From sequence record PQ898602.1: a stretch of DNA of 64,000 nt; one strand, 5' to 3'. A program made the position numbers and the translations under genes. Positions 4,018 through 39,860 of the stretch are shown in pieces (position 1 is the stretch's first letter; every line of letters begins with the position of its first letter). Below the pieces are notes generated by a model, which saw only the letters and a list, made by a program, of their open reading frames with translations, had not been told where the DNA came from and ran no database searches.

Positions 4018-4194
4018 ATGTCACAATTCTGCTTCACCGATCTCTCTGATGAACAACGCCGATTGTTAATCGACGCAGTATGGATGAGACAAAGATCCTA
4101 TATTGCTGGAGATCGAATGTTCAGAGAGTATGGGAAGATGTTAGATGATTTGAGAATTGGTTTTGAAGATTACGTTCCATGTCAATACAGATGA
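4018..4194 (+). CDS. hypothetical protein (58 aa)
   Basis: Hand-translated MSQFCFTDLSDEQRRLLIDAVWMRQ...; ATGA overlap with zwf. Confidence 0.55.
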   Translation: MSQFCFTDLSDEQRRLLIDAVWMRQRSYIAGDRMFREYGKMLDDLRIGFEDYVPCQYR

Positions 4195-7984: not shown

Positions 7985-7994
7985 TTTTAGATTT

Positions 7995-8002
7995 TATAAA
8001 TA
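7995..8002 (+). promoter_or_regulatory. T4-type late promoter
   Basis: TATAAATA 11 nt before ATG 8014. Confidence 0.65.
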
Positions 8003-8013
8003 ATCTTCAACCG

Positions 8014-13322: not shown

Positions 13323-13323
13323 A

Positions 13324-13893
13324 ATGAAAATTGAAATTGTAAAGGATCAGGTCCGTGAACTTGATCATGCTCATCTGAGACAACTTTCTCTCAATGAAAA
13401 TGACTGGTTGCCTGCAGGTCAGAGTGAGTATCGTTTTTATGCATACCTCTCTACTTTCTTTAATAACACCACTATCCTAGACATCGGTACTCGTACTGGT
13501 GGTTCTGCACTTGCACTTTCCTACAATCCTACCAATCAAGTTCGCAGTTATGACTTGATTGAACAGGGTGCAAGTTCTATTGAGAAAGAAAATATCACCT
13601 GGAACATTGGTGACTTCATGCAAGATGAAGAGATCGACTGGGACAATGTTTCGATTGTCATGATTGATGTCGATCCTCATGATGGATCCCAAGAACGTGT
13701 TATGATGGACTGGTTGCGTGAGAAGGGATGGAAAGGTCTACTTCTTCACGATGATATTGGACCTGGTTGGCCTGATATTCAATTGATGTGGGATGAAATT
13801 CCCGAACCTAAAATTGACGTTACTGAGATTGCTCATATGAGTGGTACTGGTCTTGTCAACTTTGGTGAAGCACACGAAATTGCTCTTGTCTGA
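13324..13893 (+). CDS. class I SAM-dependent methyltransferase
   Basis: ILDIGTRTGGS, IDVDPH, LLLHDD. Confidence 0.75.
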   Translation: MKIEIVKDQVRELDHAHLRQLSLNENDWLPAGQSEYRFYAYLSTFFNNTTILDIGTRTGGSALALSYNPTNQVRSYDLIEQGASSIEKENITWNIGDFMQDEEIDWDNVSIVMIDVDPHDGSQERVMMDWLREKGWKGLLLHDDIGPGWPDIQLMWDEIPEPKIDVTEIAHMSGTGLVNFGEAHEIALV

Positions 13894-14747
13894 TGAAAGT
13901 TTTAAATCTTGGTTCTAGTGGTCAGGTGGGTGCATACCTGACCGAATATCTTCGTAAGAAAGGTCATGAGGTAATTGAGTTCGATCGGAACCGACATCAT
14001 GGGGAAGATATGACTCAAATCCCCAACCACAATCTTGATCGTGCAGTGAGGGAATGTGACTTCTGTTTCTTCCTTGCATTTGATGTTGGTGGATCTCGTT
14101 ACCTGAAAAAGTATCAACATACCTTCAGGTTCCTTGATAACAATGCTCGATTGATGACACAGACCTTTGGTCTACTTGAGAAGTACAATAAACCATTTGT
14201 CTTCGCATCATCTCAGATGAGTAACATGTCTTACTCACCTTATGGTGTGATGAAACGAGTTGGAGAACTCTACACCAAGTCTCTTGGTGGTAAGATTGTT
14301 CACTTCTGGAATGTCTATGGTATTGAAAAAGACATGGACAAAGCACACGTCATCACTGACTTCATTAAAAAAGGATTTGAGACTGGTGACATCTCTATGT
14401 TGACAGATGGAACTGAACAACGTGAGTTCCTCTATGCAGAAGATTGTTGTGAAGCACTAGAGTCTGTCATGGAGAACTACGATGAACTAAGTTCAGATGA
14501 TAACCTCCATATCACATCCTTTGACGCTACTACTATTCTTGACATCGGACACATTATCCAAGGTCTATTTGCAGAGATTGGTCGTAGTGTGAGTGTCACA
14601 CCTGCAGAATCTAAGGATGAGGTTCAGAAAGATAAGAGGAATGAAGCTGATAAATTCATTACTAAGTATTGGAAACCTAAAACTACTATTCAAGAAGGTA
14701 TCCGTAACGTATTCAATGACATGAAAGGGGAGTTTAATAATGCCTGA
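13893..14747 (+). CDS. NAD-dependent epimerase/dehydratase (WcaG-like)
   Basis: GSSGQVG, YGVMK, NVYG, DGTEQREF. Confidence 0.85.
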   Translation: MKVLNLGSSGQVGAYLTEYLRKKGHEVIEFDRNRHHGEDMTQIPNHNLDRAVRECDFCFFLAFDVGGSRYLKKYQHTFRFLDNNARLMTQTFGLLEKYNKPFVFASSQMSNMSYSPYGVMKRVGELYTKSLGGKIVHFWNVYGIEKDMDKAHVITDFIKKGFETGDISMLTDGTEQREFLYAEDCCEALESVMENYDELSSDDNLHITSFDATTILDIGHIIQGLFAEIGRSVSVTPAESKDEVQKDKRNEADKFITKYWKPKTTIQEGIRNVFNDMKGEFNNA

Positions 14748-15381
14748 TATGTACCAGGAGGTAGATAATATCTTCCCCCAGTTTGCTAACAATGATTCCT
14801 GTGACATTGTATTCTTTTCCGAAGAGATTCAAGATCTAGACGAAGGATGTATTGTTGAGTTTGGTGTTGCATCTGCACAGACCACTATTGAGATGGCACG
14901 ATGTAATCCAGATCGACCTCTATTTGCTTTCGATCATTTCCTTGGTCTTGAACAAACCTCAAAACCTACTCCCGAACATGCTGGATGGGGTGAAGGTGCA
15001 TTCCGTGTTGGTGATCCAGATCATCCTTGGATCCCTGATTCTATCGAGGGTGTTTTCAAGAAACTGGAACGTTATAAGAATGTCAATCTATTCGTAGAAG
15101 ATGTTCATGAACTGAAAGATCCATCCGAGTATGGTATTGGTAAGGTTGCTGCAGTCAATGTTGACGTTGACATTTATGAACCTACAGTATCTTGTCTAAA
15201 TTATATTGATCGACTTGAATGGGATAAACTTTATATCCGATTCGATGACTGGCATGGTCACGATCCTCAGTTCGACCACCACGAAAGACTCGCTGCCCGT
15301 GAGTGGTTAGATAGAAATCCACATTATAAATTTGACATTCCTCAAAACGGACATGTCGGTGGTATGTACGTCTGGAGATGA
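14740..15381 (+). CDS. TylF/MycF-like O-methyltransferase
   Basis: IVEFGV, FDHFLG, VDVDIYEPT, RFDDW. Confidence 0.75.
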   Translation: MPDMYQEVDNIFPQFANNDSCDIVFFSEEIQDLDEGCIVEFGVASAQTTIEMARCNPDRPLFAFDHFLGLEQTSKPTPEHAGWGEGAFRVGDPDHPWIPDSIEGVFKKLERYKNVNLFVEDVHELKDPSEYGIGKVAAVNVDVDIYEPTVSCLNYIDRLEWDKLYIRFDDWHGHDPQFDHHERLAAREWLDRNPHYKFDIPQNGHVGGMYVWR

Positions 15382-15382
15382 C

Positions 15383-16186
15383 ATGGAAAAGTTCAAAATT
15401 AATCTAATTTGTAATGACTCCCTGAAACCATCTACATCAGATAAGAATGTTTCTCAACATACTGAATGGGTGTACGATGGTAGTGGTGCGGTAAGTCTTT
15501 ACGTCAATCAAAGATCGTTAGATGTTCTATCTGACGTATCTAATACACCAAAATATATTTGGTTGTTGGAATCTCAACAGATCATCTCAGGTGTGTATGA
15601 ATGGATCATCAACAATTATGATTTTGTTGCATCCAGAGTTGATGGTATCTTCTCTTGTGATGAGAACCTTTGTCAAAGATATGACAAGTTCAAGTATTGC
15701 ATCAGTAATGCTGCTCCTTGGATCGAAGAACGAGAGATTTATGAGAAGACTAAACTAGTCTCTATGATCTCCTCAAATAAATCTATGGTTCCTGGTCATG
15801 TCAAACGACTGGAATTTGTAGAGAAGTTCCGAGATCATGTTGACTTGTATGGTCGTGGATTCCGTGATCTTCCCCGAAAAGAAGAAGGACTTAAAGACTA
15901 CATGTTCTCTATCGCAGTAGAGAATGCCGTGTACGATACATACTTTACAGAGAAACTTACAGATTGTTTCGCTACTGGAACAATTCCTATCTTTTACGGA
16001 TCAAAGAAGGTCATCAAGAAATACTTCAACCCCGATGGGGTAATCTTCCTAGATGATAATTTCGACATTTCTACATTGACGGAAGATCTCTATTACTCTA
16101 AAATGGACGCGATCAAGGACAATTTTGAACGTGCTTGTCGTTGGCCAGTTGCAGAAGACTTTCTTTACAAACAATATTGGACATGA
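15383..16186 (+). CDS. glycosyltransferase, GT10 (fucosyltransferase)-like
   Basis: VDLYGRG, YMFSIAVEN, YFTEKLTDCF..GTIPIFYG. Confidence 0.75.
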   Translation: MEKFKINLICNDSLKPSTSDKNVSQHTEWVYDGSGAVSLYVNQRSLDVLSDVSNTPKYIWLLESQQIISGVYEWIINNYDFVASRVDGIFSCDENLCQRYDKFKYCISNAAPWIEEREIYEKTKLVSMISSNKSMVPGHVKRLEFVEKFRDHVDLYGRGFRDLPRKEEGLKDYMFSIAVENAVYDTYFTEKLTDCFATGTIPIFYGSKKVIKKYFNPDGVIFLDDNFDISTLTEDLYYSKMDAIKDNFERACRWPVAEDFLYKQYWT

Positions 16187-16962
16187 GTACATACAAAGGA
16201 TGGGAAGCGGAAGCTAAGTACGCTAACGAATATCTAGATGCCTGTCGTAGTGCAGTTGCAGATGATGAAATCTTCGCAAGATTCAAATCATTGGAAGGAT
16301 ACAAACATATCCTTGAACATGTAACTCCACGTCAGGGTGGAGAGTATCTTCTTGAGGCACTTGAAATGTCTGAAGAAGGTCTCTTGGAAAATATCGAAGC
16401 CTTTAAGGAGAATGATTCTATCGGTGCTCCCGATACATTTTCTTATAGAGAAACGGGTAAAATCTCTCCCACTACAATTCGATATATCAAAAACGTCTTT
16501 GAGATGGCTACTCTCCTTGGAGAGACTCCTATCAGTCGTGTAGTAGAAGTTGGTGGCGGGTATGGTGGTCTTTGCAAGACTCTCAGCGTAGTATGTGATT
16601 TCGACGAATATATTTTAGTAGACCTTCCTGAAGCAGTTGCAGTTCAGGAAAAATTCATTAGTAACTTCCCTGAACTTCATAAGAAGTGTAAGTTTGTAAG
16701 TTGTGATGACGTAGAAGAAGTAAAGGATGTAGATCTGTTTATTAGTAACTATGCACTATCTGAGTGTGATTATGATACTCAAGTGAACTACTATGATAAA
16801 TTGGTTGCAAACTCTAAGTATGCTTATATTATCTACAATCTTGTCAACTTTAATGATTTCTATTATAATAAATTTACAACTCGAATGAGTGAGACTTTCG
16901 AGTTCACCACTCATAAAGACTACGAGAACACAGTAATCCTAGCAAAAGAAAAGGGCCTATGA
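16183..16962 (+). CDS. putative sugar O-methyltransferase
   Basis: SPTTIRY, VVEVGGGYGGL, VDLPE, DLFISNYALSEC. Confidence 0.75.
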   Translation: MSTYKGWEAEAKYANEYLDACRSAVADDEIFARFKSLEGYKHILEHVTPRQGGEYLLEALEMSEEGLLENIEAFKENDSIGAPDTFSYRETGKISPTTIRYIKNVFEMATLLGETPISRVVEVGGGYGGLCKTLSVVCDFDEYILVDLPEAVAVQEKFISNFPELHKKCKFVSCDDVEEVKDVDLFISNYALSECDYDTQVNYYDKLVANSKYAYIIYNLVNFNDFYYNKFTTRMSETFEFTTHKDYENTVILAKEKGL

Positions 16963-17810
16963 ATCGTATCGAAGATTATGCAGAACTGACTGACAACATT
17001 GTTAAGTGGATTTCTGATTATTGTTTGTTGAATAAAAGGAAGACCCTAGTTGTGGGGATCTCTGGGGGTATCGACTCCTCGGTGGTCTCCACTCTCAGTG
17101 CATTGACAGGTATGAAAACCTACGTGGTTGGTATGCCTATCAATCAGATTGAGGGTCAAGAAGAACTTTCTGATGCCCATGGTGAATGGTTGCAGTCAAG
17201 ATTCAGTAATGTTACTTTTGTCAAGACTGACATGAGTAAAGTCTATGATAGTTTTCTTCAAACTATCAATGATGATATTGGTGCTAGATATGCGACTGAT
17301 AAACTCGCACAAGCCAATACCCGTTCCAGATTCAGGATGGTAACCTTATATCAGATTGCTGCATCTGTTGGAGGTATTGTCATCGGTACTGGAAACAAAG
17401 TAGAAGACTATGGAGTTGGTTTTTACACTAAGTATGGTGATGGTGGCATTGATATTGCTCCGATTGCTGATCTTTATAAAACAGAAGTTTGGGAACTAGG
17501 TGAAAGTCTAGGTATTGATCCACGTATCGTTTCTGCTGCACCAACTGATGGTCTTTGGGATGATGGACGTACTGATACTGATCAACTCGGTGTATCATAT
17601 GAACTCTTAGAGTGGGTCATGGAGTCTGGTGTTGCTGAGTGGATGCAAGGTAACCCTGAGGAACTTACTCAATGGCAAGGTAATGATCTTACTTCAGATC
17701 AGAAAGAAGCCATTGATCAGTACCGAAAGTTCCATAGACAAAATCGTCACAAGATGGATCCTATCCCCACATATAAAGTAGAATTTAAACCCGCACCTCA
17801 TTTTGTATAA
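16959..17810 (+). CDS. nadE: NH3-dependent NAD+ synthetase
   Basis: GISGGIDS, ANTRSRFRM, GTGNKVE, FYTKYGDGG, PIADLYKTEV, PTDGLW, DQLG.SY. Confidence 0.92.
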   Translation: MNRIEDYAELTDNIVKWISDYCLLNKRKTLVVGISGGIDSSVVSTLSALTGMKTYVVGMPINQIEGQEELSDAHGEWLQSRFSNVTFVKTDMSKVYDSFLQTINDDIGARYATDKLAQANTRSRFRMVTLYQIAASVGGIVIGTGNKVEDYGVGFYTKYGDGGIDIAPIADLYKTEVWELGESLGIDPRIVSAAPTDGLWDDGRTDTDQLGVSYELLEWVMESGVAEWMQGNPEELTQWQGNDLTSDQKEAIDQYRKFHRQNRHKMDPIPTYKVEFKPAPHFV

Positions 17811-17816
17811 AAAGTC

Positions 17817-18962
17817 ATGAAGATTGGTCTTATTGGTGCAGGACGACTTGGTATCTGTCTCGCTCTCTTGATTGAGAGGGCGGGATATAATGTTTTGGTA
17901 TCTGATATTCGTCCTGACTATGTTGCTGCATTAAATAAGAAACAGATAACCACGGAAGAACCCGATGTCCAATGGCTCCTCAGACAAACAGAATGGTTCG
18001 AGGCAACGTGGGACAACCAACGTGTCATCAACGAATGCGACCTTATTATTTGTCTTGTTGCAACTCCTTCTCGTAGTGATGGTTCTTATAATGTAGATGC
18101 CGTTTGGGAAGTTATAGAAGACTTCAAAGATTCAGAAGCGAAACTCAATGGAAAGACTTTGGTCATTGGTTGTACAACCAATCCTGGAGATTGCGAGAAG
18201 TTCCAAGAACACTTGGACTACTTCGGTGTGAGTGTTGTTTACAATCCCGAGTTCATCGCACAAGGAACAATCATAAGAGATTTGCAGAATGCAGACATGG
18301 TTCTCATTGGTGGTGCTGATGATGAGACCTTTGAGACTATGCAAAGAATCTATGAAAAAATTCAAGCACGCCCACCTCGGTGGGGTCGAATGTCTACAAC
18401 TGCTGCAGAACTTGTAAAGATTGCAGTCAATTGTTTCGTCACTACGAAGATTAGTTTTGCAAACATGGTCGGTGAGGTCATGATTGGTGCAGGACTTGAT
18501 GAGGAGATCGATACAGTTCTTCGTGCGATTGGTGACGACTCCCGAATCGGAAATAAATATCTCAAGTACGGGTATGGATTTGGTGGTCCATGTCTTCCCA
18601 GAGACAATCGTGCCTTTGCATCGTTTGCATCAAAGGTAGGAGTCAAGTATAATCTGGGTGATACTACTGATAACTTCAACAAAGAACACGCAAAGTTCCT
18701 GAAGAATTACTATATCAAACAGAACAAGGATAGTAGTGCATTCTACTTCCGATATGTCTCGTACAAACCTGGTACTGATATCCTGACTGAGAGTCAGCAG
18801 TATCGTCTATGTGTAGATCTTCTATATGAAGGTTACACCTGTTATGTTGATGATGTTGATAGTATTATTGCTCAACTGAAACAGGATCCTAGACTTAATG
18901 TCACCAGACTTAAGTTCGGGAAACCACCAGAACATGAACACGTTATTGAAATTAATCTATGA
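17817..18962 (+). CDS. ugd: UDP-glucose/GDP-mannose 6-dehydrogenase family
   Basis: GAGRLG, YNPEFIAQG, AELVKIAVN, GYGFGGPCLPRD. Confidence 0.9.
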   Translation: MKIGLIGAGRLGICLALLIERAGYNVLVSDIRPDYVAALNKKQITTEEPDVQWLLRQTEWFEATWDNQRVINECDLIICLVATPSRSDGSYNVDAVWEVIEDFKDSEAKLNGKTLVIGCTTNPGDCEKFQEHLDYFGVSVVYNPEFIAQGTIIRDLQNADMVLIGGADDETFETMQRIYEKIQARPPRWGRMSTTAAELVKIAVNCFVTTKISFANMVGEVMIGAGLDEEIDTVLRAIGDDSRIGNKYLKYGYGFGGPCLPRDNRAFASFASKVGVKYNLGDTTDNFNKEHAKFLKNYYIKQNKDSSAFYFRYVSYKPGTDILTESQQYRLCVDLLYEGYTCYVDDVDSIIAQLKQDPRLNVTRLKFGKPPEHEHVIEINL

Positions 18963-19819
18963 TTGGGTATAATAGACTTGGTAATAATGGACGTTTGGGA
19001 AACCAGATGTTCCAATATGCCTCATTGAGAGGTATTGCAGCGAAGAATGGATACGATTGGTGTATCCCGCCCGAAGACTGCCAACATAAAGATAACTATG
19101 GTCTTTTTGAAACTTTCAAGATGACCAACGTTGGCCCCAAGAATCTTGGATTTGTTCAAGGTGATTATGTTCAGGAGAACGATCATTGTTTCCTTCCTGA
19201 CTTCTTCGATAAACTACCTGACAATGTAAGTCTGGATGGATACTTCCAGACAGAAAAGTATTTTTCTCACATTGCAAATGAGATCCATGAAGATTTCACA
19301 TTTAGAGAAGATTATCTCGATCCTTGTACAGAGTTCATTAATAGTCTGGATAGGCCTCCTATTTTTCTGCATATTCGTCAGTCCGATAATATTGGACGAG
19401 AGGAATACCACCCCATCCTCCCTATTTCATATTTTGAAGAAGCACTGAAAGAGTTTCCTGAAGATACTCCTTGTTTTGTTCTCACCGACGATTTGGAATG
19501 GTGTAAGAAACAAGAGTTCTTCCAACAGGATAGATTCCTGTTCAATGAAAGTAATGGTAGATATACTTACAAGACCATTGATGGTACTGGTCGTATGCAG
19601 AACACTCTTCTTCCTCAGGTAGATCTCTGTCTGATGAGTTTGTGTTCTGGTGCCATCATTGCAAACTCATCCTTCTCTTGGTGGGGTGCCTGGTTGCAGA
19701 AGAATAGAGGTAAGATTGTTGCTCCAGATCCTGATAAGTGGTTTGGTACTGCAATGACTAACCTAGATACCTCAGACATCGTGCCTGATCGTTGGATTGT
19801 ACAAGAGTGGAGTAAGTAA
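18959..19819 (+). CDS. alpha-1,2-fucosyltransferase-like GT11, copy 1
   Basis: GRLGNQMFQYA, GYFQTEKYF, HIR, IIANSSFSWWGAWL. Confidence 0.88.
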   Translation: MIGYNRLGNNGRLGNQMFQYASLRGIAAKNGYDWCIPPEDCQHKDNYGLFETFKMTNVGPKNLGFVQGDYVQENDHCFLPDFFDKLPDNVSLDGYFQTEKYFSHIANEIHEDFTFREDYLDPCTEFINSLDRPPIFLHIRQSDNIGREEYHPILPISYFEEALKEFPEDTPCFVLTDDLEWCKKQEFFQQDRFLFNESNGRYTYKTIDGTGRMQNTLLPQVDLCLMSLCSGAIIANSSFSWWGAWLQKNRGKIVAPDPDKWFGTAMTNLDTSDIVPDRWIVQEWSK

Positions 19820-20715
19820 TGGCTGTAACATTTAAAGGGCTTGGTAATGAAGGTCGTCTGGGTAACCAGATGTTCCAATATGCATTCATCCGTGGAGTCG
19901 CTGCTAATCGTGGATTTGACTGGATGATTCCTCCTGAAGATGCAGATCGACTAGACAACTATGGTCTGTTTGATGCATTTGAACTAACTAACTGTGATCT
20001 AAATAAGAACACTGGAGAACCCTTCTACAAGACTGTAGAGTATAGGGACATGCATTTCAACGAAGAAATCTATGAACGTTGCGAAGACAATACCAATTTC
20101 TCTGGGAATTTCCAAACAGAAAAGTACTTCGATGCAATCGCTCCGTCTATCCGTGAGGATTTCACTTTTAAAAAGGCGTACCTGGAACCGTGTCAAGAGT
20201 TTGTTGATTCTCTTGGTGGACGTGATCAGTGCATCTTTTTGCACGTTCGTAGAGGTAACCCAAACCTTACTGGGCGGAGAGGGGAAAAGTGGTCTTACCA
20301 GATGGTGCAAGAGTACCACCCACTCTGTAAAGCTGACTATTATGATAGGGCGCTCCAAGAGTTCCCCGAAGACAAACAAGTCATCGTCGTCTCTGACGTA
20401 ATCGATTGGTGTAAGAAACAACCTTATCTTCAGGGAGATCGATTCCACTTCTCTGATGCATCTTATGAAGAGTTTGGTGATGGTGCTTCTGTGCCATATA
20501 TCGATCTTTGTTTGATGACTCTCTGTGGTGGTGCTATCATCGCCAACTCTTCTCTGTCTTGGTGGGGTGCATGGTTGCAAGGAGACGCAGGAAAGGTGGT
20601 TGCACCAGATCCCTGGTTTGGACCTGCATATTCCCACTACAATATGAAGGATATGATTCCAGAACGATGGGTTAAACTTCATAACGATCCCCGACCCATC
20701 CCTGCTGAACGATGA
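19819..20715 (+). CDS. GT11, copy 2
   Basis: GRLGNQMFQYA, HVRRG, ANSSLSWWGAWL. Confidence 0.88.
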   Translation: MAVTFKGLGNEGRLGNQMFQYAFIRGVAANRGFDWMIPPEDADRLDNYGLFDAFELTNCDLNKNTGEPFYKTVEYRDMHFNEEIYERCEDNTNFSGNFQTEKYFDAIAPSIREDFTFKKAYLEPCQEFVDSLGGRDQCIFLHVRRGNPNLTGRRGEKWSYQMVQEYHPLCKADYYDRALQEFPEDKQVIVVSDVIDWCKKQPYLQGDRFHFSDASYEEFGDGASVPYIDLCLMTLCGGAIIANSSLSWWGAWLQGDAGKVVAPDPWFGPAYSHYNMKDMIPERWVKLHNDPRPIPAER

Positions 20716-21536
20716 AAGATTTAACATTCCTATTACCATGTCGTATTGAATCTGAAGATAGACTCAAGAACGTCATTACATCGACTACATATCTACTGAA
20801 GAACTTCCCTGATGCAAAAGTAATTGTAAAGGAAGTAGATGTTAGATCACACTTCAAATTCAGAGCATTACCAGTCATTCAAAAGTATGTTGGTACTCAA
20901 AAACTGAGACATATTTTTGAAGAAAGTGAAGAAAGGTTCTTTCACAAGACTCGCATCCTGAATGATCTTCTGGTTGCTGCAGACACAGACATCGTGTATA
21001 ATCATGATGTAGATGTAGTACTGCCTAAAAAGAGTTACGAGATTGCATACAATGCAATTAAGAACCAAGGTGTAGACTGCATGTATCCTTTTGGTGCAGG
21101 TGTCTATCAATGGGCTGTAAACTACTCTGAGCCCGTTTTCAATCAGTTCCTGGATTCTAACTTTGACTTCGATGTCTTAACTGACTCAAAGTTTAGAGTT
21201 GCTTCTTCTATTGGTTGGGGACAAATGTTGAAGAGAGAAGTGGAAATCAAAGCAGGACTCTGGAATGAGAACTTTATCTCATGGGGTGCTGAGGATTGTG
21301 AGTTCTACTTCAGACTTTGTTCTCTCGGATTCAAGGTAGGTAGAGTCGTTGCAGACATCTACCACTTTGAACATGGTAGAACTTTCAACTCCCATTATCA
21401 CAATCCAAAATTCATGGATAACCACAACCTGTGGCAATCAATCAGGACGTGGGATTCAACCAAACTCAAAAACTATTATCGATCACAAGATTACATTCGC
21501 CAGAGAGGAGACCAGTTAAATGTTAGCGTTCAATGA
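20712..21536 (+). CDS. glycosyltransferase (GT2/GT7-C galactosyltransferase-like)
   Basis: DRLKN, HDVDV, WNENFISWGAEDCEF, YHFEH. Confidence 0.8.
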   Translation: MKDLTFLLPCRIESEDRLKNVITSTTYLLKNFPDAKVIVKEVDVRSHFKFRALPVIQKYVGTQKLRHIFEESEERFFHKTRILNDLLVAADTDIVYNHDVDVVLPKKSYEIAYNAIKNQGVDCMYPFGAGVYQWAVNYSEPVFNQFLDSNFDFDVLTDSKFRVASSIGWGQMLKREVEIKAGLWNENFISWGAEDCEFYFRLCSLGFKVGRVVADIYHFEHGRTFNSHYHNPKFMDNHNLWQSIRTWDSTKLKNYYRSQDYIRQRGDQLNVSVQ

Positions 21537-22374
21537 ACTAGGTAATAGTGGTCGTCTGGGTAACCAGATGTTCCAGTATGCAGCCCTAAGAGGTATTGCT
21601 GCAAACAAAGGATATGACTGGTGTATTCCACCTTTCGGTATCCAACGCATTGACAACTATAGTCTTGCGAATTGTTTCCTCATGGAAGATGTAAAGTCCA
21701 CAAACCAGTATCTTCTGGATCGTGGATTTGCTCCTGTGGTTATGGAGAAACAATATCACTTTGATCAGGAACTTCTTGATCTCTGCCCCAATGATGTTTC
21801 CATTCAAGGATTCTTTCAAACTGAAAAGTACTTTGCAGGTATCCGTGATGTGATCCGCAAAGAGTTTACTTTCCATGAAGATCTGGTGACTCCTATTGTT
21901 GAGTTCTTGAATGAACTCAAAGATCCTATCTTCCTTCATGTTCGTCGTGGTGACCCCAATCTTGTAGATGCCCGTGGATTCAAATGGTCTTACACTCAAT
22001 GCTCTTCGCAACATCCTCCTCAGACTCTGGAATACTATGAGGAAGCCCTCAAGAGGTTCCCAGAGGATCAGGAAGTTGTAATCGTCTCAGACTCGCCTGA
22101 GTGGGTCATGGAACAAGAACTCTTCAAACCCGATAGGTTCTACGTCTCTACACCCGAAGAGAAGTATCCTGATGGTTCCTACACCCCTTATGTGGACCTG
22201 TCTATTATGGCTCATTGTAAGGGTGGTATTATTGCAAACTCGTCTCTCTCCTGGTGGGGTGCTTGGTTGCAGAATGGTGCTGGTAAGATTATCGCACCTA
22301 AGAATTGGTTCGGACCTGACTATGCCGACAAAGACACCAGTGATCTGTATTGTGAGGGTTGGGAAGTTATCTGA
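21520..22374 (+). CDS. GT11, copy 3
   Basis: GRLGNQMFQYA, HVRRGD, ANSSLSWWGAWL. Confidence 0.88.
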   Translation: MLAFNELGNSGRLGNQMFQYAALRGIAANKGYDWCIPPFGIQRIDNYSLANCFLMEDVKSTNQYLLDRGFAPVVMEKQYHFDQELLDLCPNDVSIQGFFQTEKYFAGIRDVIRKEFTFHEDLVTPIVEFLNELKDPIFLHVRRGDPNLVDARGFKWSYTQCSSQHPPQTLEYYEEALKRFPEDQEVVIVSDSPEWVMEQELFKPDRFYVSTPEEKYPDGSYTPYVDLSIMAHCKGGIIANSSLSWWGAWLQNGAGKIIAPKNWFGPDYADKDTSDLYCEGWEVI

Positions 22375-23165
22375 TGGATAAGAATAAGTCCGTATCTAAA
22401 CTCAATGGTATGGGACCAATCTATTATATTAATCTAGATGGTCAACCAGAACGAAGGGAATACATGGAGAACATGTTTGCCCACTGGGAAATTACCGATT
22501 ATGAAAGAATCTCTGCCTACGATGGTAGAGAAGATGATCTGAGTGATATTCTCACTGGTAGATATCCTCAGAACATGAGTTCTGGTGAGATTGGATGTAC
22601 GACATCTCACCTGAAACTTCTTAAACATTTTCTAGAAACTTCCGATGCACCATATTGTGTGGTCATGGAAGATGATGTTGATATTAACACTGCAAAGTTC
22701 TGGTCATTTTCTTGGAATCAGTTCCTTGCACGGGTTCCTTATGACTATGATGTAGTTCAACTTGCAGTGATCTGCCCTGGAACTCTTCATGTCAACCTCC
22801 ACAGGAGATTCGTTAATGACTTCTCCACCGCCTGCTACATGATCACTCGCCATCATGCGGAAAAGGTAGTAAGGTTACATTGTCGAGGTGACAAGTACAA
22901 ACTGGATCACGCAGTCAAACCCCGTGCAGTCGCGGATGATTTGATTTACAATTCAGGAAATACTTTTGCCATTCCTATCTTTCTCTATAAGATTGAGATG
23001 GGTTCATCAATCCACCCAGAACACATTGAGGTCTTCCACAGAGGTTCCCATGATGGTCTGAGAGACCTTTGGCTTACCCGAGGATCTGATCTTGAGATTG
23101 ATCGACTCATGGATTTTGACCCATATCTAGGTCGGACATCCGAAAAACAACAACAAGTGACTTGA
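22374..23165 (+). CDS. glycosyltransferase family 25 (LPS biosynthesis-like)
   Basis: YYINLD...ERR, GEIGC..SH, VVMEDDV. Confidence 0.85.
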   Translation: MDKNKSVSKLNGMGPIYYINLDGQPERREYMENMFAHWEITDYERISAYDGREDDLSDILTGRYPQNMSSGEIGCTTSHLKLLKHFLETSDAPYCVVMEDDVDINTAKFWSFSWNQFLARVPYDYDVVQLAVICPGTLHVNLHRRFVNDFSTACYMITRHHAEKVVRLHCRGDKYKLDHAVKPRAVADDLIYNSGNTFAIPIFLYKIEMGSSIHPEHIEVFHRGSHDGLRDLWLTRGSDLEIDRLMDFDPYLGRTSEKQQQVT

Positions 23166-26385: not shown

Positions 26386-26685
26386 ATGGCTGATTACAAA
26401 GTTACTCTGGTAGACACTGACGGAAAAGAACATACCTTTGTTTGCGATGAAGATGAAACCATTCTTGATCGTGCAGAAGAAGCAAATGTAGATGCAGAAC
26501 TTCCTTATTCTTGTAAAGCTGGTGCATGTTCTGCATGTGCTGGTAAGATCACGGAAGGAACTGTTGACCAAGAAGATCAATCTTTCCTTGATGACGATCA
26601 GATCGAAGCAGGTTTTGTTCTCACCTGTGTTGCACGACCCACTAGTGATGTTCGCATCCTCCTTGCACAAGAAGAAAACATCTGA
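26386..26685 (+). CDS. petF: plant-type [2Fe-2S] ferredoxin
   Basis: [15 protein letters not shown]...LTCVA. Confidence 0.96.
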
Positions 26686-26687
26686 TT

Positions 26688-27224
26688 ATGCCTCGTCTAT
26701 CACCTGAAGAAGTATCTAAAGTCCCCTCCGTGGACTTTATGTTCCGTGAAGACGGAGAGTTTGTTGCTCGTTCTACCGAAGAACTTTTTGGTGGTAAACG
26801 TGTAGTTCTCTTCGCACTCCCTGGTGCATTCACTCCTACTTGCAGTGCTTACCAACTCCCTGGTTATGAAGCCTTCTACGATATGTTCCGTGAACAAGGT
26901 ATCGATGAGGTTTTCTGTCTCTCTGTAAACGATGCATTTGTAATGAATGCCTGGGGTAAAGACCAAGGTATCGAAAAAGTCAAACTCATTCCAGATGGTA
27001 ATGGCGAGTTTACTAGTTACATGGGATTACTCGTTAAGAAGTTCAACCTAGGTTTTGCGTCACGTTCTTGGCGTTATGCCATGGTGGTCAATGATATGGT
27101 TATTGAACAAATCTTCGCAGAAGATGGAATCGGTGACAACGTGGATGAAGATCCCTATGAGTGGTCAACTCCAGAAAAACTACTAGAATATGTGAAGGGT
27201 GAAGAACCCGTAATCGCACAATAA
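26688..27224 (+). CDS. peroxiredoxin (Prx5/type II)
   Basis: LPGAFTPTCS peroxidatic Cys, SVNDAFVM.AW, RSWRYAM. Confidence 0.93.
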   Translation: MPRLSPEEVSKVPSVDFMFREDGEFVARSTEELFGGKRVVLFALPGAFTPTCSAYQLPGYEAFYDMFREQGIDEVFCLSVNDAFVMNAWGKDQGIEKVKLIPDGNGEFTSYMGLLVKKFNLGFASRSWRYAMVVNDMVIEQIFAEDGIGDNVDEDPYEWSTPEKLLEYVKGEEPVIAQ

Positions 27225-27228
27225 ATAC

Positions 27229-27252
27229 GAGGAGGGAAACCTCCTCCTTTTT
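27229..27252 (+). terminator. GNRA-loop terminator-like hairpin immediately before glgP
   Basis: GAGGAGG-GAAA-CCTCCTC-CTTTTT; ATAAATA at 27221-27227. Confidence 0.7.
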
Positions 27253-27255
27253 AAT

Positions 27256-29631
27256 ATGTTAAAAACCAGCATCACGGATAGAGTCGAGAGTCATCTCCTC
27301 TACACATTGGGTAAGAACCCAGATAATGCTACATCACATGACGTATACACTGCTTTGTGTTATGCGGTTCGAGACAGAATGGTTGAAAACCATTTAGTTC
27401 CCAAGTCTCCCCGTAAAGAAGTTGCGTATCTTTCTGCAGAATTTTTGATTGGACCTCAACTGAGTAACAATCTTCTCAACTTAGATATCCGCAAAGATGC
27501 TGAGAGTGCAGTTGGTAAGTTCGGATATGGTCTAGAAGAGATTCTGGATCATTCTGTTGAACCTGGACTTGGTAATGGTGGTCTAGGTAGACTTGCTGCA
27601 TGTTATATGGAATCCATGGCGACTCTGAGAGTTCCTGCCACTGGATATGGTATTAGATATAAGTATGGTATTTTCAAACAAACTATCAAAGATAACCAAC
27701 AGGTAGAGGTTACCGACAACTGGTTGCATGGTGATTGGCCATGGGAACTCTGTTACCCCGATGAGTCGGTAATGGTTGGATTTGGTGGTAAGGTAGAACG
27801 ATATGGTAATAAGGTTCGGTGGGTTCCTGAAAAGAATGTCGTCGCAGTGCCTTATGATGTTCTGCAAGCAGGATACAAGGTAGATAGTTGTGCAAAGATC
27901 CGCCTCTGGAGAGCAGACGCGATTGATGTATTTGACTTCAAAGCATTTAACCAGGGAGACTATCTTGGTTCTGTCGAGAATAGTGTGACCTCAGAGACTA
28001 TCTCTAAAGTTCTTTATCCTAATGATGGTACAGACCAAGGAAAGGAACTTCGACTGAAACAACAATTCTTCTTTGTAAGTGCTTCTCTTCAGGACATGAT
28101 TAGAAGTTTGGAAGAACGCGATCTTCCTGTGGAAGAGTTCTACAAACATTATCAAGTTCAGTTGAATGATACTCACCCATCAGTTGCAGTTGCAGAACTG
28201 ATGAGAATCCTTATGGATGATTATCACTTTGAGTGGGATCTTGCATGGGACATTACTAGTAAGTCTATCGCATATACAAATCACACACTGCTTCCTGAAG
28301 CACTGGAGAAGTGGAGTGTAAGTCTTTTCGAGAAACTTCTACCTAGACATTTGGAGATCATTTATGAAATCAACTCCAGATTCCTCCAGATCGTTAGAAT
28401 GCACTACCCTGGAGACGAGGAAACCCTTCGCAAACTTTCTATCATTGATGAGACGGGTGGTAGATATGTCAGAATGGCCAATCTTGCAACAGTCGGATCT
28501 CACCATATCAATGGTGTTGCGGCACTTCACTCAGATCTGATTACCAAGAACCTGATGCCCGAGTTCTATGATCTCTGGCCTCATAAGTTTACCAACGTGA
28601 CTAATGGTGTAACACCACGTCGTTGGTTGGCAGATTCCAACCCTGCACTTGCAGAAGTTCTTGATGAATATGTTGGTGAGGATTGGGTATCTCACATGGA
28701 TCGTCTTAGTGAATTGGAGAACTATGCAGATGATCCAGTTGTTCTTGAGAAGATCGGTGCAACAAAACTTATTGGAAAACATAAGCTTGCACAATACATA
28801 AAGAAGACACTTGGCATTTCTGTTGATCCGTCAAGTATGTTTGATGTGCAGGTAAAGAGAATTCATGAGTACAAACGACAGCATCTCCTTGCTCTATGGA
28901 TTGTGTCTCGGTATTTGTATATCAAAAATCATAAAGACGATTATGTTGTTCCACGTACAGTAATCTTTGGTGGTAAAGCCGCACCTGGTTACTACATGGC
29001 GAAAGAGATCATTCGTTTCATTTGTAATGTTGCGGAGACTATCAACTCTGACCCAGACATGGATGGGAAGTTACGTGTGGTCTTCCTACCAAACTATAGT
29101 GTGAAGTTGGGTGAGAAAGTTTATCCTGCTGCAGATCTCTCTGAACAGATCTCAACCGCAGGTAAGGAGGCGTCTGGTACTGGTAACATGAAGTTCCAGA
29201 TGAATGGTGCTTTGACTATTGGTACACTCGATGGTGCAAACGTTGAGATCCGTGATCTGGTTGGTGAAGAGAACTTCTTCCTCTTTGGTAAGACTGAAGA
29301 AGAGATTGGTCAACTATGGGCGAATGGATACAAACCTCAGTTCCATATGAGTGCTTCTCTATTTGAAGCAATCGAACTCATCAGATCGGGTCACTTCTCC
29401 AATGGTGATAAAAATGCATTCAATTCCATCATTGATAATTTGATGGAGAGTGATCCATTCTGTGTTTGTGCAGACTTCTCTGACTACTGCCGTGCTCAGA
29501 ACGTTGTGGATAACACATGGGGTAACAGAAAGGAATGGAATCGTAGATCTCTGATGAACATTGCGAGATCTGGATTCTTCTCTTCGGATAGATCTATTCA
29601 AGACTACTGCGATAACATTTGGAAAGTATGA
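27256..29631 (+). CDS. glgP: glycogen/alpha-glucan phosphorylase (GT35)
   Basis: 791 aa; SAEFLIGPQL, GLGNGGLGRLAACY, QLNDTHP, YTNHTLLPEALE, NGVAALHS, VKRIHEYKRQ, GGKAAPGY, EASGTGNMK (PLP lysine). Confidence 0.97.
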   Translation: MLKTSITDRVESHLLYTLGKNPDNATSHDVYTALCYAVRDRMVENHLVPKSPRKEVAYLSAEFLIGPQLSNNLLNLDIRKDAESAVGKFGYGLEEILDHSVEPGLGNGGLGRLAACYMESMATLRVPATGYGIRYKYGIFKQTIKDNQQVEVTDNWLHGDWPWELCYPDESVMVGFGGKVERYGNKVRWVPEKNVVAVPYDVLQAGYKVDSCAKIRLWRADAIDVFDFKAFNQGDYLGSVENSVTSETISKVLYPNDGTDQGKELRLKQQFFFVSASLQDMIRSLEERDLPVEEFYKHYQVQLNDTHPSVAVAELMRILMDDYHFEWDLAWDITSKSIAYTNHTLLPEALEKWSVSLFEKLLPRHLEIIYEINSRFLQIVRMHYPGDEETLRKLSIIDETGGRYVRMANLATVGSHHINGVAALHSDLITKNLMPEFYDLWPHKFTNVTNGVTPRRWLADSNPALAEVLDEYVGEDWVSHMDRLSELENYADDPVVLEKIGATKLIGKHKLAQYIKKTLGISVDPSSMFDVQVKRIHEYKRQHLLALWIVSRYLYIKNHKDDYVVPRTVIFGGKAAPGYYMAKEIIRFICNVAETINSDPDMDGKLRVVFLPNYSVKLGEKVYPAADLSEQISTAGKEASGTGNMKFQMNGALTIGTLDGANVEIRDLVGEENFFLFGKTEEEIGQLWANGYKPQFHMSASLFEAIELIRSGHFSNGDKNAFNSIIDNLMESDPFCVCADFSDYCRAQNVVDNTWGNRKEWNRRSLMNIARSGFFSSDRSIQDYCDNIWKV

Positions 29632-30308
29632 ACGTCTGGGTTGGGTACGATACCCGTGAACATGATGCTTTCGAGGTCTGTAGATATAGTATTCATAAAC
29701 ACAGACCCGAAGTAGAAGTACATGCAATCGAACAAAAAAATATGAGATTACTGGGTCTTTATACTAGACCTGTTGATGATCTTGCTTCGACCGAGTTCTC
29801 TCTGACTCGGTTTCTTACTCCTGCCCTATCAGAATTTAAGGGGTGGTCACTCTATTGTGATTGTGACTTCCTCTTTTTAGATGATATTCAGAAGTTGTTT
29901 GATCTTGCAGATCCTAAGTATGCTGCAATGGTAGTTAAACATGACTATAAACCAAAGGGTCGTTATAAGATGGATGGACGTTTCCAATGGTCATATCCAA
30001 GAAAGAACTGGAGTTCTCTGATTCTATTCAATAACGAACACCCAGCACATCAGTCTCTGGATGTCAACAACATGTCTCCTGTTGAGTTGCATCGATTTAC
30101 TTGGATTGATGATAAAGATCTAGGTGAACTACCTGGATGTTGGAACTGGTTGGTTGGTTATGATGATGATTCATGGCCATATAAAGATCCATCTGCACTT
30201 CATTATACCGACGGCGGTCCATGGTTTGAGGAGACTAAGGATTGCGACTACGCCGATCTATGGAACAATTCTTATGAAGAGTGGAGTAAGACTAAGATTT
30301 CTGGATAA
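29628..30308 (+). CDS. glycosyltransferase (GT8-like phage type)
   Basis: STEFSLTRFL, DCDFLF, YPRKNWSSLILFN, LHYTDGGPWF. Confidence 0.8.
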   Translation: MNVWVGYDTREHDAFEVCRYSIHKHRPEVEVHAIEQKNMRLLGLYTRPVDDLASTEFSLTRFLTPALSEFKGWSLYCDCDFLFLDDIQKLFDLADPKYAAMVVKHDYKPKGRYKMDGRFQWSYPRKNWSSLILFNNEHPAHQSLDVNNMSPVELHRFTWIDDKDLGELPGCWNWLVGYDDDSWPYKDPSALHYTDGGPWFEETKDCDYADLWNNSYEEWSKTKISG

Positions 30309-36917: not shown

Positions 36918-36959
36918 AATCAACGGATTAAGAAACGTAACGTTTTCTAATCTATTGTA

Positions 36960-37075
36960 AACTCTCCGTAAACCGAGACCTCTAGGGAGTATAAATCACG
37001 TCTCTAATACCCGAGCCGGAGGGTGGCACGGGAATACTTATAACTGGTTCGTCCCCCGAACTTTTACTTAACCCT
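36960..37075 (+). ncRNA. psbA 5' leader RNA, probably PhotoRC-II motif
   Basis: GAGAC...GTCTC and CCCG..CGGG pairings in the psbA 5' UTR; family assignment from recall and position. Confidence 0.55.
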
Positions 37076-37086: not shown

Positions 37087-38163
37087 ATGGCTACAACTCT
37101 TTCAAGACAACAAACATCTACCTGGGAAGACTTTTGTTCCTGGGTGACCAGCACCAATAATCGTCTGTATGTCGGTTGGTTCGGAGTCCTCATGATTCCT
37201 ACCCTTCTTGCCGCAACAGTCTGCTTCATCACTGCTTTCATCGCTGCCCCACCAGTTGACATCGATGGAATCCGCGAACCAGTTGCTGGTTCTCTAATGT
37301 ATGGTAATAATATCATCTCTGGTGCCGTCGTACCATCGTCTAACGCAATCGGTCTTCACTTCTATCCCATCTGGGAAGCCGCCTCTCTCGATGAGTGGCT
37401 CTACAATGGTGGTCCTTTCCAACTTGTAGTATTCCACTTCCTGATCGGCATCTATGCCTACATGGGTCGTGAGTGGGAACTCTCTTATCGTCTGGGTATG
37501 CGCCCTTGGATCTGTGTTGCATACTCCGCACCTGTTGCTGCTGCTTCTGCAGTCTTCCTCGTCTATCCTTTCGGTCAAGGTAGTTTCTCCGATGCTATGC
37601 CTCTTGGTATCTCTGGTACTTTTAACTATATGCTTGTATTCCAAGCAGAACACAATATCCTTATGCATCCGTTCCACATGCTCGGTGTTGCTGGGGTATT
37701 CGGTGGATCTCTGTTCTCTGCTATGCACGGAAGTCTGGTTACTTCTTCTCTCGTCCGTGAGACGACTGAAACTGAGTCCCAGAACTATGGTTACAAGTTC
37801 GGTCAAGAAGAAGAGACCTACAACATCGTCGCCGCTCATGGTTACTTCGGTCGTTTGATCTTCCAATATGCATCCTTTAACAACTCACGTTCTCTGCACT
37901 TCTTCCTCGCTGCGTGGCCTGTTATCGGCATCTGGTTCACTGCTCTTGGTGTTAGCACCATGGCATTCAACCTTAACGGATTCAACTTCAACCAGTCTAT
38001 CCAAGACAACCAAGGACACGTCCTTAACACTTGGGCAGACGTTCTGAACCGCGCTGGTCTCGGTATGGAAGTCATGCACGAGCGTAATGCTCACAACTTC
38101 CCTCTGGACCTTGCTGCTGCTGAGTCCACTCCTGTTGCGCTTTCCGCACCTTCTATCGGTTGA
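37087..38163 (+). CDS. psbA: photosystem II D1 protein (intron-free)
   Basis: [14 protein letters not shown]...[13 protein letters not shown]. Confidence 0.99.
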
Positions 38164-38184
38164 TCAAAAAATCGGTTATAATAG

Positions 38185-38208
38185 GGAGGTCTTAGGACCT
38201 CCTTTTTT
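38185..38208 (+). terminator. intrinsic terminator after psbA
   Basis: GGAGGTC-TTAG-GACCTCC-T6. Confidence 0.8.
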
Positions 38209-38231
38209 ATTCTAAAGTTTTGTAAAGTTTT

Positions 38232-38594
38232 ATGATTGGCAAACTCGACCCCGAAGAAAATGTTATGAATGATGATTCTGTAATTGCAAAACGCAAAGCA
38301 ATCGCTGTATGCAACCAAGGTGTAGTCCAAGACCTTTACGACACAATCGCTAAACTTGGATGGGATTGCTATGACGACATTGATGTTGAGATTGGTGGTA
38401 CTTCAGTTTCTGGTATTGATGTTGGTGAGGAGTACAACAAAAAGTGGCAGTCGCCTCTAGGTACTCGGAAGTATAATAAAGATGCATTTATTATTATCAA
38501 GAACCAAGGTCGTCGTGATTTGACTAAATCACAACCTTTCCCTGAAGGTGAGTTCAAACCCCAACATCCTCATGAACCTTATACCTCCAACTAG
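38232..38594 (+). CDS. hypothetical protein
   Basis: 120 aa ORF between psbA and psbD. Confidence 0.7.
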   Translation: MIGKLDPEENVMNDDSVIAKRKAIAVCNQGVVQDLYDTIAKLGWDCYDDIDVEIGGTSVSGIDVGEEYNKKWQSPLGTRKYNKDAFIIIKNQGRRDLTKSQPFPEGEFKPQHPHEPYTSN

Positions 38595-38802
38595 TCCTGA
38601 ATACTTTAACCAAACTTCAGAAGATCCATACGATCGACATACTTACAGGTTGCACCTTTCAAATGGTGAACATCGAGACTTCAACTCATGGGAAGAAACC
38701 GCTGGTGCATGGTTTCAATTACCTGCATTGTTTACTTCCCACGTTGAAGTGTTAGATAAACCTGACAAGAAACCTAAACGACAGACTAAAGGATTTAAAT
38801 AA
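38572..38802 (+). CDS. hypothetical protein
   Basis: ORF ending 2 nt before psbD. Confidence 0.6.
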
Positions 38803-38804
38803 CT

Positions 38805-39860
38805 ATGACAACTTCAACTTTAAATATTCCACAGAGGGGGTGGTTCGATGTCCTTGATGACTGGCTTAAACGAGATCGCTTTGTCTTTGTGGGTTGGTCT
38901 GGACTACTTCTTTTTCCCACTGCTTATCTTGCAATTGGTGGCTGGCTTACTGGCACGACGTTTGCTACGAGCTGGTACACCCACGGACTCGCAACTAGTT
39001 ACCTTGAGGGTGCTAATTTTCTTACAGCGGCAGTGTCAACTCCTGCTGACGCTATGGGTCATTCTCTTCTTCTACTTTGGGGTCCTGAGTCTCAGGGAGA
39101 TTTCGTCCGCTGGATCCAGCTTGGGGGACTCTGGGCTTTTGTGGCGCTCCACGGAGCCTTCGCTCTGATTGGTTTCATGTTGCGTCAGTTTGAACTTGCA
39201 CGTCTTATCGGTATCCGTCCGTACAATGCGATTGCGTTCTCTGGTCCCATTGCTGTTTTTGTTAGCGTTTTTCTCATCTACCCTCTCGGACAATCCAGTT
39301 GGTTCTTTGCGCCGTCTTTCGGTGTCGCGGCGATTTTCCGCTTCCTTCTCTTCCTCCAGGGTTTTCATAACTGGACGCTCAATCCCTTCCATATGATGGG
39401 TGTTGCAGGTATCCTGGGTGGTGCATTGCTTTCTGCGATTCATGGTGTTACAGTAGAGAACACGTTGTATCAAGATGGTGAACAAGCAAACACATTCAAA
39501 GCATTTGACTCAACCCAAGAAGAAGAAACCTACTCCATGGTTACCGCCAACCGATTTTGGTCACAAATTTTCGGTATTGCATTTAGTAATAAGAGGTGGC
39601 TTCATTTCTTCATGTTGTTTGTGCCTGTTATGGGTCTTTGGACTTCTTCTATCGGCATCATCGGACTTGCACTCAACCTTCGGGCGTATGATTTCGTCTC
39701 GCAAGAAATCCGTGCCGCAGAAGACCCCGAGTTTGAGACGTTCTATACTAAGAACATCCTGCTCAACGAAGGTCTACGTGCTTGGATGGCGCCAGTAGAT
39801 CAACCTCACGAACAATTCATCTTCCCTGAGGAAGTTCTTCCCCGTGGTAATGCACTCTAA
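38805..39860 (+). CDS. psbD: photosystem II D2 protein
   Basis: [16 protein letters not shown]...[10 protein letters not shown]. Confidence 0.99.

Follow-up and report, generated by a model that had tools for sequence, protein, structure and literature searches.

Marine virus ecology has long asked how cyanophages fund their replication in terms of carbon, reducing power and energy, above all during the night, in deep water or once they have shut down CO2 fixation. In the model attributed to Thompson and colleagues (from 2011), the carbon auxiliary metabolic genes (AMGs) of cyanophages reportedly channel carbon out of the Calvin cycle into the pentose-phosphate pathway. The carbon AMGs listed for cyanophages include cp12, talC, zwf and gnd (PMC12801897). 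The accepted picture built on CP12, TalC, Zwf and Gnd is silent on the source of glucose-6-phosphate (G6P), a gap that a phage glycogen phosphorylase (GlgP) would fill. For the host enzyme, the literature describes the C-terminal extension of GlgP as a cyanobacteria-specific regulatory peptide, and Synechocystis GlgP1 carries a Cys837–Cys842 redox switch, the oxidised form being active and the thioredoxin A-reduced form having 10–20% activity. Here we analysed a stretch of 64,000 nucleotides (the window) that contains SSCSM2R_260, a GlgP-like gene of a cultured cyanophage. We consider it probable that its product is a catalytically competent glycogen phosphorylase AMG, whose glucose-1-phosphate (G1P) would be passed on to the pentose-phosphate pathway and nucleotide synthesis.

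With 100% identity, the window corresponds to the final 64 kb of record PQ898602.1, the complete circular genome (244,186 bp) of Synechococcus phage S-SCSM2R, a T4-like cyanomyovirus isolated on Synechococcus WH7803 (South China Sea). In GenBank, SSCSM2R_260 bears the label "carbohydrate phosphorylase". The S-SCSM2R paper discusses many new AMGs, with SSCSM2R_260 and glycogen absent from its text, and the sole "phosphorylase" named there is a mannosylglucose phosphorylase, ORF194 (PMC12801897). In short, the gene has a database entry and a label but no published interpretation.

The first-pass annotation of this DNA, made from the letters without database searches, had described a full-length GT35 phosphorylase of 791 residues with every diagnostic motif, including the lysine that carries pyridoxal phosphate (PLP). 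This description was borne out by the open reading frame (ORF), by two family profiles and by the positions of the motifs. The protein matched PF00343 (carbohydrate phosphorylase; Pfam) with 1032.7 bits (cutoff 27) over positions 3–713 of a 713-position profile, and TIGR02093 (NCBIfam) with 1125 bits (cutoff 552.9). It contains SAEFLIGPQL (residues 60–69), the glycine-rich loop GNGGLGRLAAC (106–116), LYPND (253–257), TNHT (341–344), TNGVTPRRW (449–457), KRIHEYKRQ (534–542) and EASGTGNMK (638–646), the last of which holds the PLP lysine K646 (nt 29191–29193). The phosphate- and glucosyl-binding motifs aligned without gaps to solved phosphorylase structures; in rabbit numbering, the residues concerned are those of the glycine-rich loop, His377, Asn484 and Lys568/Arg569/Tyr573/Lys574. 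Across the phage clade described below, the catalytic motifs were kept in 239–240 of 240 sequences, and the lysine motif EASGTGNMK in all 240. The top sequence match among solved structures was the alpha-glucan phosphorylase of Crocosphaera (PDB 9wvu; 974 bits). An AlphaFold2 model of the phage protein (pLDDT 76, pTM 0.79, with low confidence in the active-site loops at 612–661) adopted the GT-B fold, with TM scores of 0.92 to 9wvu and 0.91 to both E. coli GlgP and rabbit muscle phosphorylase. Taken together, these comparisons show that SSCSM2R_260 encodes an intact, predicted PLP-dependent GT35 phosphorylase with a complete active site. Among viral resources, BFVD returned no structure resembling GT35 at E ≤ 0.001; PHROGs v4 does hold a GT35 family, phrog_23782 (930 bits to the window protein), labelled 'unknown function'.

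The gene belongs to the phage. Its GC content is 42%, and 38% at third codon positions (GC3), matching the neighbouring phage genes, whereas host-type glgP has 60% and 77% respectively. It is flanked in GenBank by hli, petF and a peroxiredoxin gene upstream and by psbA and psbD downstream, so that the phage-type neighbours reported earlier were confirmed. An independent uncultured contig, a 239-kb uncultivated viral genome (L015), is collinear with S-SCSM2R for ~18 kb around GlgP, and an ENA contig of 481,176 bp (L162) encodes an 86% identical GlgP in the context petF–GlgP–psbA–psbD–plastocyanin (petE)–talC. The complete isolate genome, the syntenic 239-kb contig and the phage-like composition uphold the statement of the first-pass annotation that this is not a host contig fragment, and we rejected host contamination or a chimera on the basis of the isolate genome, the synteny in independent contigs and the GC3 values. 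SSCSM2R_260 is an AMG, namely a host-derived metabolic gene in a bona fide phage genome that lies outside the core functions of replication and structure. Phage-type GlgP in cyanophage context was also seen on three contigs of 400–480 kb, namely L162, P0043 (482,719 bp) and P0143 (401,277 bp). L162 and P0043 are about twice 240 kb and may be concatemeric assemblies instead of larger genomes; a cellular source for these 481–482-kb contigs was rejected in view of this size and of their cyanophage local context.

The closest match in a cellular genome was an 840-residue GlgP on a 2.5-Mb Synechococcus contig (a metagenome-assembled genome, MAG) with 65% identity, other cellular matches reaching at most 55%. 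Used as a query, this MAG protein retrieved the GlgPs of Prochlorococcus (MIT 9313, MIT 1300 and MIT 1341), Vulcanococcus and Synechococcus, and the phage protein shared 63–66% identity with all picocyanobacterial GlgPs. Maximum-likelihood trees (LG+C20) were built as a quick version of 63 sequences and a careful version of 57 sequences that included AT-rich, probably high-light Prochlorococcus. In both, the phage clade was monophyletic (support 100/100), as were the picocyanobacteria (99/98), and the two grouped as sisters, separated from filamentous cyanobacteria and proteobacteria by a long branch with full support. The cyanobacterial look that the first-pass annotation had read from the sequence is thus confirmed by phylogeny against host GlgP. 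The simplest reading of the trees is that a picocyanobacterial glgP was captured once, long ago, and then diversified within phages; a faster rate of evolution in phages might alternatively have drawn the clade out of the host crown. A recent transfer from the current host was rejected, given the uniform 63–66% identity, the saturated synonymous divergence (dS) and the position outside the host crown despite the inclusion of AT-rich Prochlorococcus. A proteobacterial origin was also considered, as Nevskiales and Accumulibacter ranked after the one Synechococcus MAG among genome matches, and was rejected because the tree places both outside the phage-plus-picocyanobacteria clade; these genome matches were favoured by the exact-word scan.

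The phage enzymes differ systematically from the host enzymes at their ends. We compared the 240 phage-clade sequences with 165 picocyanobacterial GlgPs. The phage proteins have 791–801 residues, compared with ~840 in picocyanobacteria, and all 240 are without ~24 N-terminal host residues, a segment that usually carries PTPGCYADP, and without 11–16 C-terminal host residues, a segment carrying an I-T-C-D/E motif. After FSSDR, the tail is 12–15 residues long in phages and 23–30 in hosts. A cysteine in the C-terminal extension was found in 0 of 240 phage proteins but within the last eight residues in 147 of 165 host proteins, most of the remaining hosts having it slightly further in; in addition, host Cys311 is replaced by a fixed alanine in the phage proteins. 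Of the marks of a cyanobacterial-type GlgP, the phage protein therefore has the phylogenetic placement with cyanobacteria but not the C-terminal extension. From the loss of the N- and C-terminal host extensions, we infer that phage GlgP has probably shed the control of the host and runs independently of it. The systematic loss of the termini in phage GlgP also constitutes a natural experiment on the control of cyanobacterial GlgP.

The genomic contexts of GlgP were surveyed in a census of 81 GlgP-bearing viral loci, 79 of which have a T4-like context. In 50 loci, GlgP starts between −55 and +7 bp from the end of regA, within a module ordered gp44 clamp loader, DNA methyltransferase, purC, endonuclease VII, regA, GlgP, purS/purM, gp43 DNA polymerase, UvsX and gp41 helicase. 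In another 21, it lies no more than 200 bp 3′ of nrdB (ribonucleotide reductase small subunit), with two more within 592 bp, and in several of these nrdB-context loci talC or gnd follows after a few kb. The remaining loci include the S-SCSM2R lineage (the window, L005, L015 and L162) and, separately, L051 and L054, where GlgP sits in an island of glycosyltransferase genes, hli and psbA; in L005, L162, L051 and L054 it is 0.2–1.7 kb upstream of psbA. In L008 and L009, homologues of gnd follow GlgP at a distance of 7–8 kb. On the GlgP tree, the regA context occurs throughout the phage clade and the other contexts fall within it at three distinct positions, suggesting that the slot between regA and gp43 is probably ancestral and that GlgP has moved several times. 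Some regA-context phages have a small heat-shock gene of the Hsp20 family directly 3′ of GlgP (L017:12469–12900 and L037:6064–6495).

A second enzyme is linked to GlgP in some of these relatives. In 19 of the 81 loci, a gene for a protein of ~235 residues stands directly 3′ of GlgP on the same strand, overlapping it or 3–6 bp away in several. The protein matched PF03332, the HAD-type phosphomannomutase family, with 75–90 bits (cutoff 22.4), and aligned over its full length with the phosphomannomutase of PDB 2i54 (1e-28), with FDVDGTLT and FFGDK..GGND kept. In PHROGs it corresponds to phrog_29277, 'unknown function', and among isolates only P-TIM68, S-SSM7 and S-SSM6a have the gene, annotated 'hypothetical' in all three, with GlgP in none of them. 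We regard the linked protein as a putative HAD-type phosphohexomutase. Enzymes of the PF03332 type interconvert hexose-1- and hexose-6-phosphates, and some handle glucose phosphates well. Because the linkage is tight, it supports a putative two-step route from glycogen to G6P in the mutase-linked phages. In S-SCSM2R itself, which encodes Zwf, Gnd and TalC within the window and CP12 beyond it, phosphoglucomutase is the sole gap between the product of GlgP and the substrate of Zwf. The loss of the host regulatory termini, the linked mutase of the relatives and the presence of Zwf, Gnd and TalC in the window are the most informative features of the system, and none of them had been noted in the first-pass annotation.

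GlgP is distributed very unequally between cultured and uncultured phages. Among 50,697 deposited phage records searched with tblastn, S-SCSM2R was the only cyanophage with a GT35 protein, whereas TalC was found in ~460 cyanophage records and Zwf in ~78. Other GT35 matches in these records were bacterial contigs filed as phage, short fragments of host DNA and unannotated faecal contigs; four of the false 'phage' matches (H22, H23, H26 and H33) were bacterial whole-genome shotgun contigs, such as one of 582 kb from Salmonella, or short host fragments carrying phage names. In IMG/VR, by contrast, at least 215 viral contigs encode GlgP relatives with 70–91% identity, compared with 317 contigs for Zwf in the same kind of scan and at least 600 for regA; these are rough counts from exact-word scans. 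The corresponding scan for TalC gave 40 matches and was unfit as a yardstick, exact 8-mers from S-SCSM2R TalC being poorly conserved, and Zwf and regA were used instead. Many of the GlgP-bearing IMG/VR contigs have a GC content of 33–36%. In a large protein database, the best 120 matches were each at least 72% identical and each formed a separate cluster at 90% identity; the top two, with 98% and 97% identity, indicate that close relatives of S-SCSM2R are present in nature. In a search restricted to 50%-identity representatives, which merged the phage and host clades, the best match was 52%. We also selected 73 viral loci with a RegA resembling that of a GlgP phage, and in 11 of them regA is immediately followed by GlgP. 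There is thus a strong culture bias: GlgP is rare in culture collections and in the literature and common in uncultured T4-like cyanophages, with hundreds of contigs. This contrast between isolates and metagenomes (one GlgP record against ~78 for zwf, but 215 against 317 IMG/VR contigs) shows how much AMG content culture collections can miss.

The first-pass annotation had placed glgP outside the standard cyanophage AMGs, which agrees with the published AMG lists reachable by full-text search, and had added that novelty would fall away if glgP were already common in cyanophages. It is common in uncultured contigs, but it is known from one cultured phage, and we found no discussion of it in the literature: a full-text search returned no paper describing a cyanophage glycogen phosphorylase. 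A review relays that Waldbauer et al. 2019 list glycogen phosphorylase among the host proteins with homologues in phage genomes or viral metagenome fragments (PMC10452541). As far as we could tell, several findings are new: that the phage GlgPs form one large clade with conserved genomic slots, that both host termini have been lost, that a putative phosphohexomutase is linked to the gene, and that it is strongly under-represented in culture.

In the role that we propose, which agrees with the direct, ATP-free tapping of host glycogen suggested in the first-pass annotation, phage GlgP would cleave host glycogen with inorganic phosphate to give G1P without spending ATP, saving the ATP that a route of hydrolysis plus kinase would cost. 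G1P would then be converted into G6P by a phosphohexomutase, which would be the host enzyme in S-SCSM2R and probably the phage HAD-type mutase in many uncultured relatives. Phage Zwf and Gnd would oxidise the G6P; with the help of TalC, and while CP12 blocks the Calvin cycle, NADPH and ribose-5-phosphate would be produced for phage nucleotides. We favour this fate of G1P because replication and nucleotide neighbourhoods predominate around GlgP, because a mutase is linked to it and because AMGs of the pentose-phosphate pathway are carried along with it. It is also favoured because the development of cyanophages is reported to be energy-limited and host glgX to be induced when S-PM2 infects WH7803 (PMC5931967). 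Activity on glycogen in vivo, the timing of expression, the fate of G1P and the escape from regulation are, in this scheme, our reading of the sequence data. A broader proposal, which we advance tentatively and hold to be somewhat less than probable, is that T4-like cyanophages share a hitherto unrecognised, widespread 'glycogen-mobilisation module', in which a terminus-stripped GlgP would go on degrading glycogen when the host enzyme is checked, e.g. by light-driven thioredoxin reduction, accompanied in many lineages by the HAD mutase. If so, phage genes (the module plus those for Zwf, Gnd, TalC and CP12) would encode nearly every step that leads from the polymer to NADPH and ribose-5-phosphate, and lineages nearly missing from culture collections would have their first laboratory model in S-SCSM2R. 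The proposed role implies that the glycogen reserves of the host, which vary with time of day and nutrient status, influence the success of infection. As S-SCSM2R is cultured on Synechococcus WH7803 and has a very broad host range, the idea is directly testable.

Several points weigh against this proposal. The paper on the phage reports no enzymatic, transcriptomic or proteomic results on SSCSM2R_260 (PMC12801897). The GlgP of S-SCSM2R stands in a glycosyltransferase and nucleotide-sugar island, outside any nucleotide module, and the linked PF03332 mutase was not found in S-SCSM2R, hence the need for the host phosphoglucomutase. In the relatives that do have it, the linked protein is nearer to phosphomannomutases (1e-28) than to HAD alpha-phosphoglucomutase (1e-7), and it may act on either mannose or glucose phosphates. 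Deletion of the C-terminal peptide in Synechocystis GlgP1 lowered the activity instead of raising it, so that the loss of the tail in phage GlgP cannot simply be equated with a 'constitutively active' enzyme. Finally, the E. coli equivalog models for GlgP and MalP (NF011562 and NF011561) were not reached, with scores of 903.4 against a cutoff of 1546 and 918.1 against 1273 respectively, so that these scores do not discriminate between glycogen and maltodextrin as the preferred substrate. Some of these points lend weight to other explanations. G1P might mainly feed nucleotide sugars (UDP-, dTDP- and ADP-glucose and their derivatives) for glycosyltransferases and sugar modifiers that remodel the host envelope or glycosylate the virion. 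The island of S-SCSM2R would suit such a use, as it holds 13 glycosyltransferases, UDP-glucose 6-dehydrogenase, two nucleoside diphosphate (NDP)-sugar epimerases, KdsA/KdsB and RmlC; the same glycosyltransferase surroundings recur in L015, L051 and L054, and the phosphomannomutase-like PF03332 enzyme comes from a family that normally supplies sugar-1-phosphates for GDP-mannose. However, 71 of the 81 loci place GlgP among genes of replication or nucleotide metabolism (following regA or nrdB; next to purM, purC, purS and gp43) with no glycosyltransferase nearby, the island position is nested in the tree and appears derived, and no phage NDP-glucose pyrophosphorylase is annotated within the window. 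We therefore regard nucleotide sugars as an unlikely main destination of G1P, although the two fates are compatible and not mutually exclusive.

The near-equal MalP and GlgP equivalog scores, together with the MalP-like length of 791 residues and the reversibility of GT35 reactions, could also be taken to mean that the phage enzyme acts mainly on soluble maltodextrins, as E. coli MalP does, or works in reverse to synthesise or prime glucans. Its closest cellular relatives are nevertheless the 840-residue picocyanobacterial GlgPs, to our knowledge the single GT35 enzymes of those genomes. Moreover, cellular ratios of phosphate to G1P favour phosphorolysis, and for the direction of synthesis a viral glgA has been reported separately; we judge both variants to be quite improbable. 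That the phage's own paper assigns no function to the gene would fit, at most, with a gene that plays no part in infection, be it a passenger from the host, a decaying relic or an artefact of chimeric assembly. Against this stand the complete circular isolate genome, the same synteny on independent metagenomic contigs, the phage-like base composition and a monophyletic phage clade well apart from the hosts. In addition, the pairwise ratio of non-synonymous to synonymous divergence (dN/dS) between phage copies is 0.06–0.15 over a deep divergence (dS from 0.7 to saturation, 0.7–2.2), and the catalytic motifs are intact almost throughout the clade. Phage GlgP has thus been kept under strong purifying selection, and the reading as a non-functional passenger is effectively excluded. 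Glycogen phosphorolysis feeding the pentose-phosphate pathway is the probable role that we retain for SSCSM2R_260.

The features of the window and the linked gene of the relatives are collected in Table 1. The stem-loop before GlgP has a folding energy of −14.8 kcal/mol (z = −4.2) and ends 4 nt 5′ of the start codon. A hairpin at this position was also found in L015, in L162/L005/L002 and in L006–L009, with the structure conserved but not the sequence, there being three unrelated stems. In L005 and L162, it is preceded by a near-consensus promoter (TTGACG-17-TATAAT), and in L002 by a very similar one in which 19 nt separate TTGACG from TATAAT. This arrangement recalls the promoter/stem-loop cassettes proposed as gene shufflers in T4-type phages. 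Between 25200 and 31000, there are 13 terminator-like hairpins, compared with 3.3 ± 1.6 expected from shuffles, many of them between short AMG genes. On its 3′ side, GlgP is joined to SSCSM2R_261 by a 4-nt ATGA overlap (29628–29631) that can be read directly from the sequence. The first-pass annotation was correct about this overlap, whereas its description of the next gene as a glycosyltransferase corresponds to the GenBank label only: SSCSM2R_261 gave no Pfam or NCBIfam match and no glycosyltransferase domain, its only match being phrog_28018 (unknown function). A 76% identical homologue lies directly 3′ of GlgP in L015. Elsewhere in the window, Rfam matches were obtained for a wcaG RNA at 10501–10598 (82.5 bits), just 5′ of a 2-oxoglutarate-Fe(II) oxygenase gene, itself located ahead of the sugar-epimerase genes, and for a PhotoRC-II RNA at 36949–37045 (71.4 bits), just 5′ of psbA. 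The coding sequence annotated as 'VapB46 antitoxin' (7927–8190) overlaps a tRNA-Pro gene (7911–7984) on the same strand, and this call looks doubtful.

Table 1. Position of GlgP, its neighbours and pathway partners in the window, and of the linked mutase-like gene in viral relatives
Feature	Position	Strand	Source and remarks
TalC transaldolase (pentose-phosphate AMG)	2666..3310	+	GenBank
Zwf glucose-6-phosphate dehydrogenase	4191..5528	+	GenBank; uses G6P, one mutase step past the GlgP product
Gnd 6-phosphogluconate dehydrogenase	5907..6893	+	GenBank
NDP-sugar epimerases, UDP-glucose 6-dehydrogenase (17817–18962) and a run of glycosyltransferases	12276..23165	+	GenBank; Table 1 of PMC12801897
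petF (ferredoxin) and peroxiredoxin	26386..27224	+	GenBank; Redoxin/AhpC Pfam matches
Hairpin GAGGAGG-GAAA-CCTCCTC plus T-run, terminator-like or cassette-boundary element	27229..27252	+	Terminator scan, RNA fold
GlgP-like GT35 alpha-1,4-glucan phosphorylase (SSCSM2R_260, XQU50173.1)	27256..29631	+	791 aa, ATG start, uninterrupted ORF
SSCSM2R_261	29628..30308	+	GenBank 'GT24' (glycosyltransferase family 24 protein), also in Table 1 of PMC12801897
psbA and psbD, defining the photosynthesis AMG island with GlgP in the S-SCSM2R lineage	37087..39860	+	GenBank
Linked PF03332 protein	L065:11573–12277; L042:2955–3671; also L056, L066, L074, L071, L059, L044 and others		Directly 3′ of GlgP

Compared with the described systems, phage GlgP resembles cp12, talC, zwf and gnd in being a host-derived central-carbon gene of T4-like cyanophages, and it is co-encoded with them in S-SCSM2R; it differs in acting upstream of them, on the storage polymer. 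The viral glgA (glycogen synthase) of Pacific Ocean viromes is likewise virus-borne and concerns the same host polymer, but it works in the opposite direction, belongs to family GT5 and is presented there as known from metagenome fragments only (PMC10452541). With E. coli GlgP and MalP, the phage enzyme shares the family, the fold and the active-site motifs at ~47% identity, yet it is an orthologue of neither and groups with cyanobacteria in the tree. Crocosphaera 9wvu, which like Synechocystis GlgP1 and GlgP2 is a cyanobacterial GT35 enzyme, is its top structural match, with 55% identity. The picocyanobacterial GlgPs (Prochlorococcus, marine Synechococcus and Cyanobium-type) have 305 alignment columns invariant with the phage proteins, and the catalytic and PLP residues are common to both; the host enzymes, however, have cysteine-bearing termini and Cys311, whereas the phage copies are without both and are encoded by an AT-rich gene. 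Finally, Synechocystis GlgP1 and GlgP2 and the Crocosphaera enzyme end in the C-terminal regulatory peptide, whereas phage GlgP stops right after the catalytic core, like the GlgPs of organisms other than cyanobacteria.

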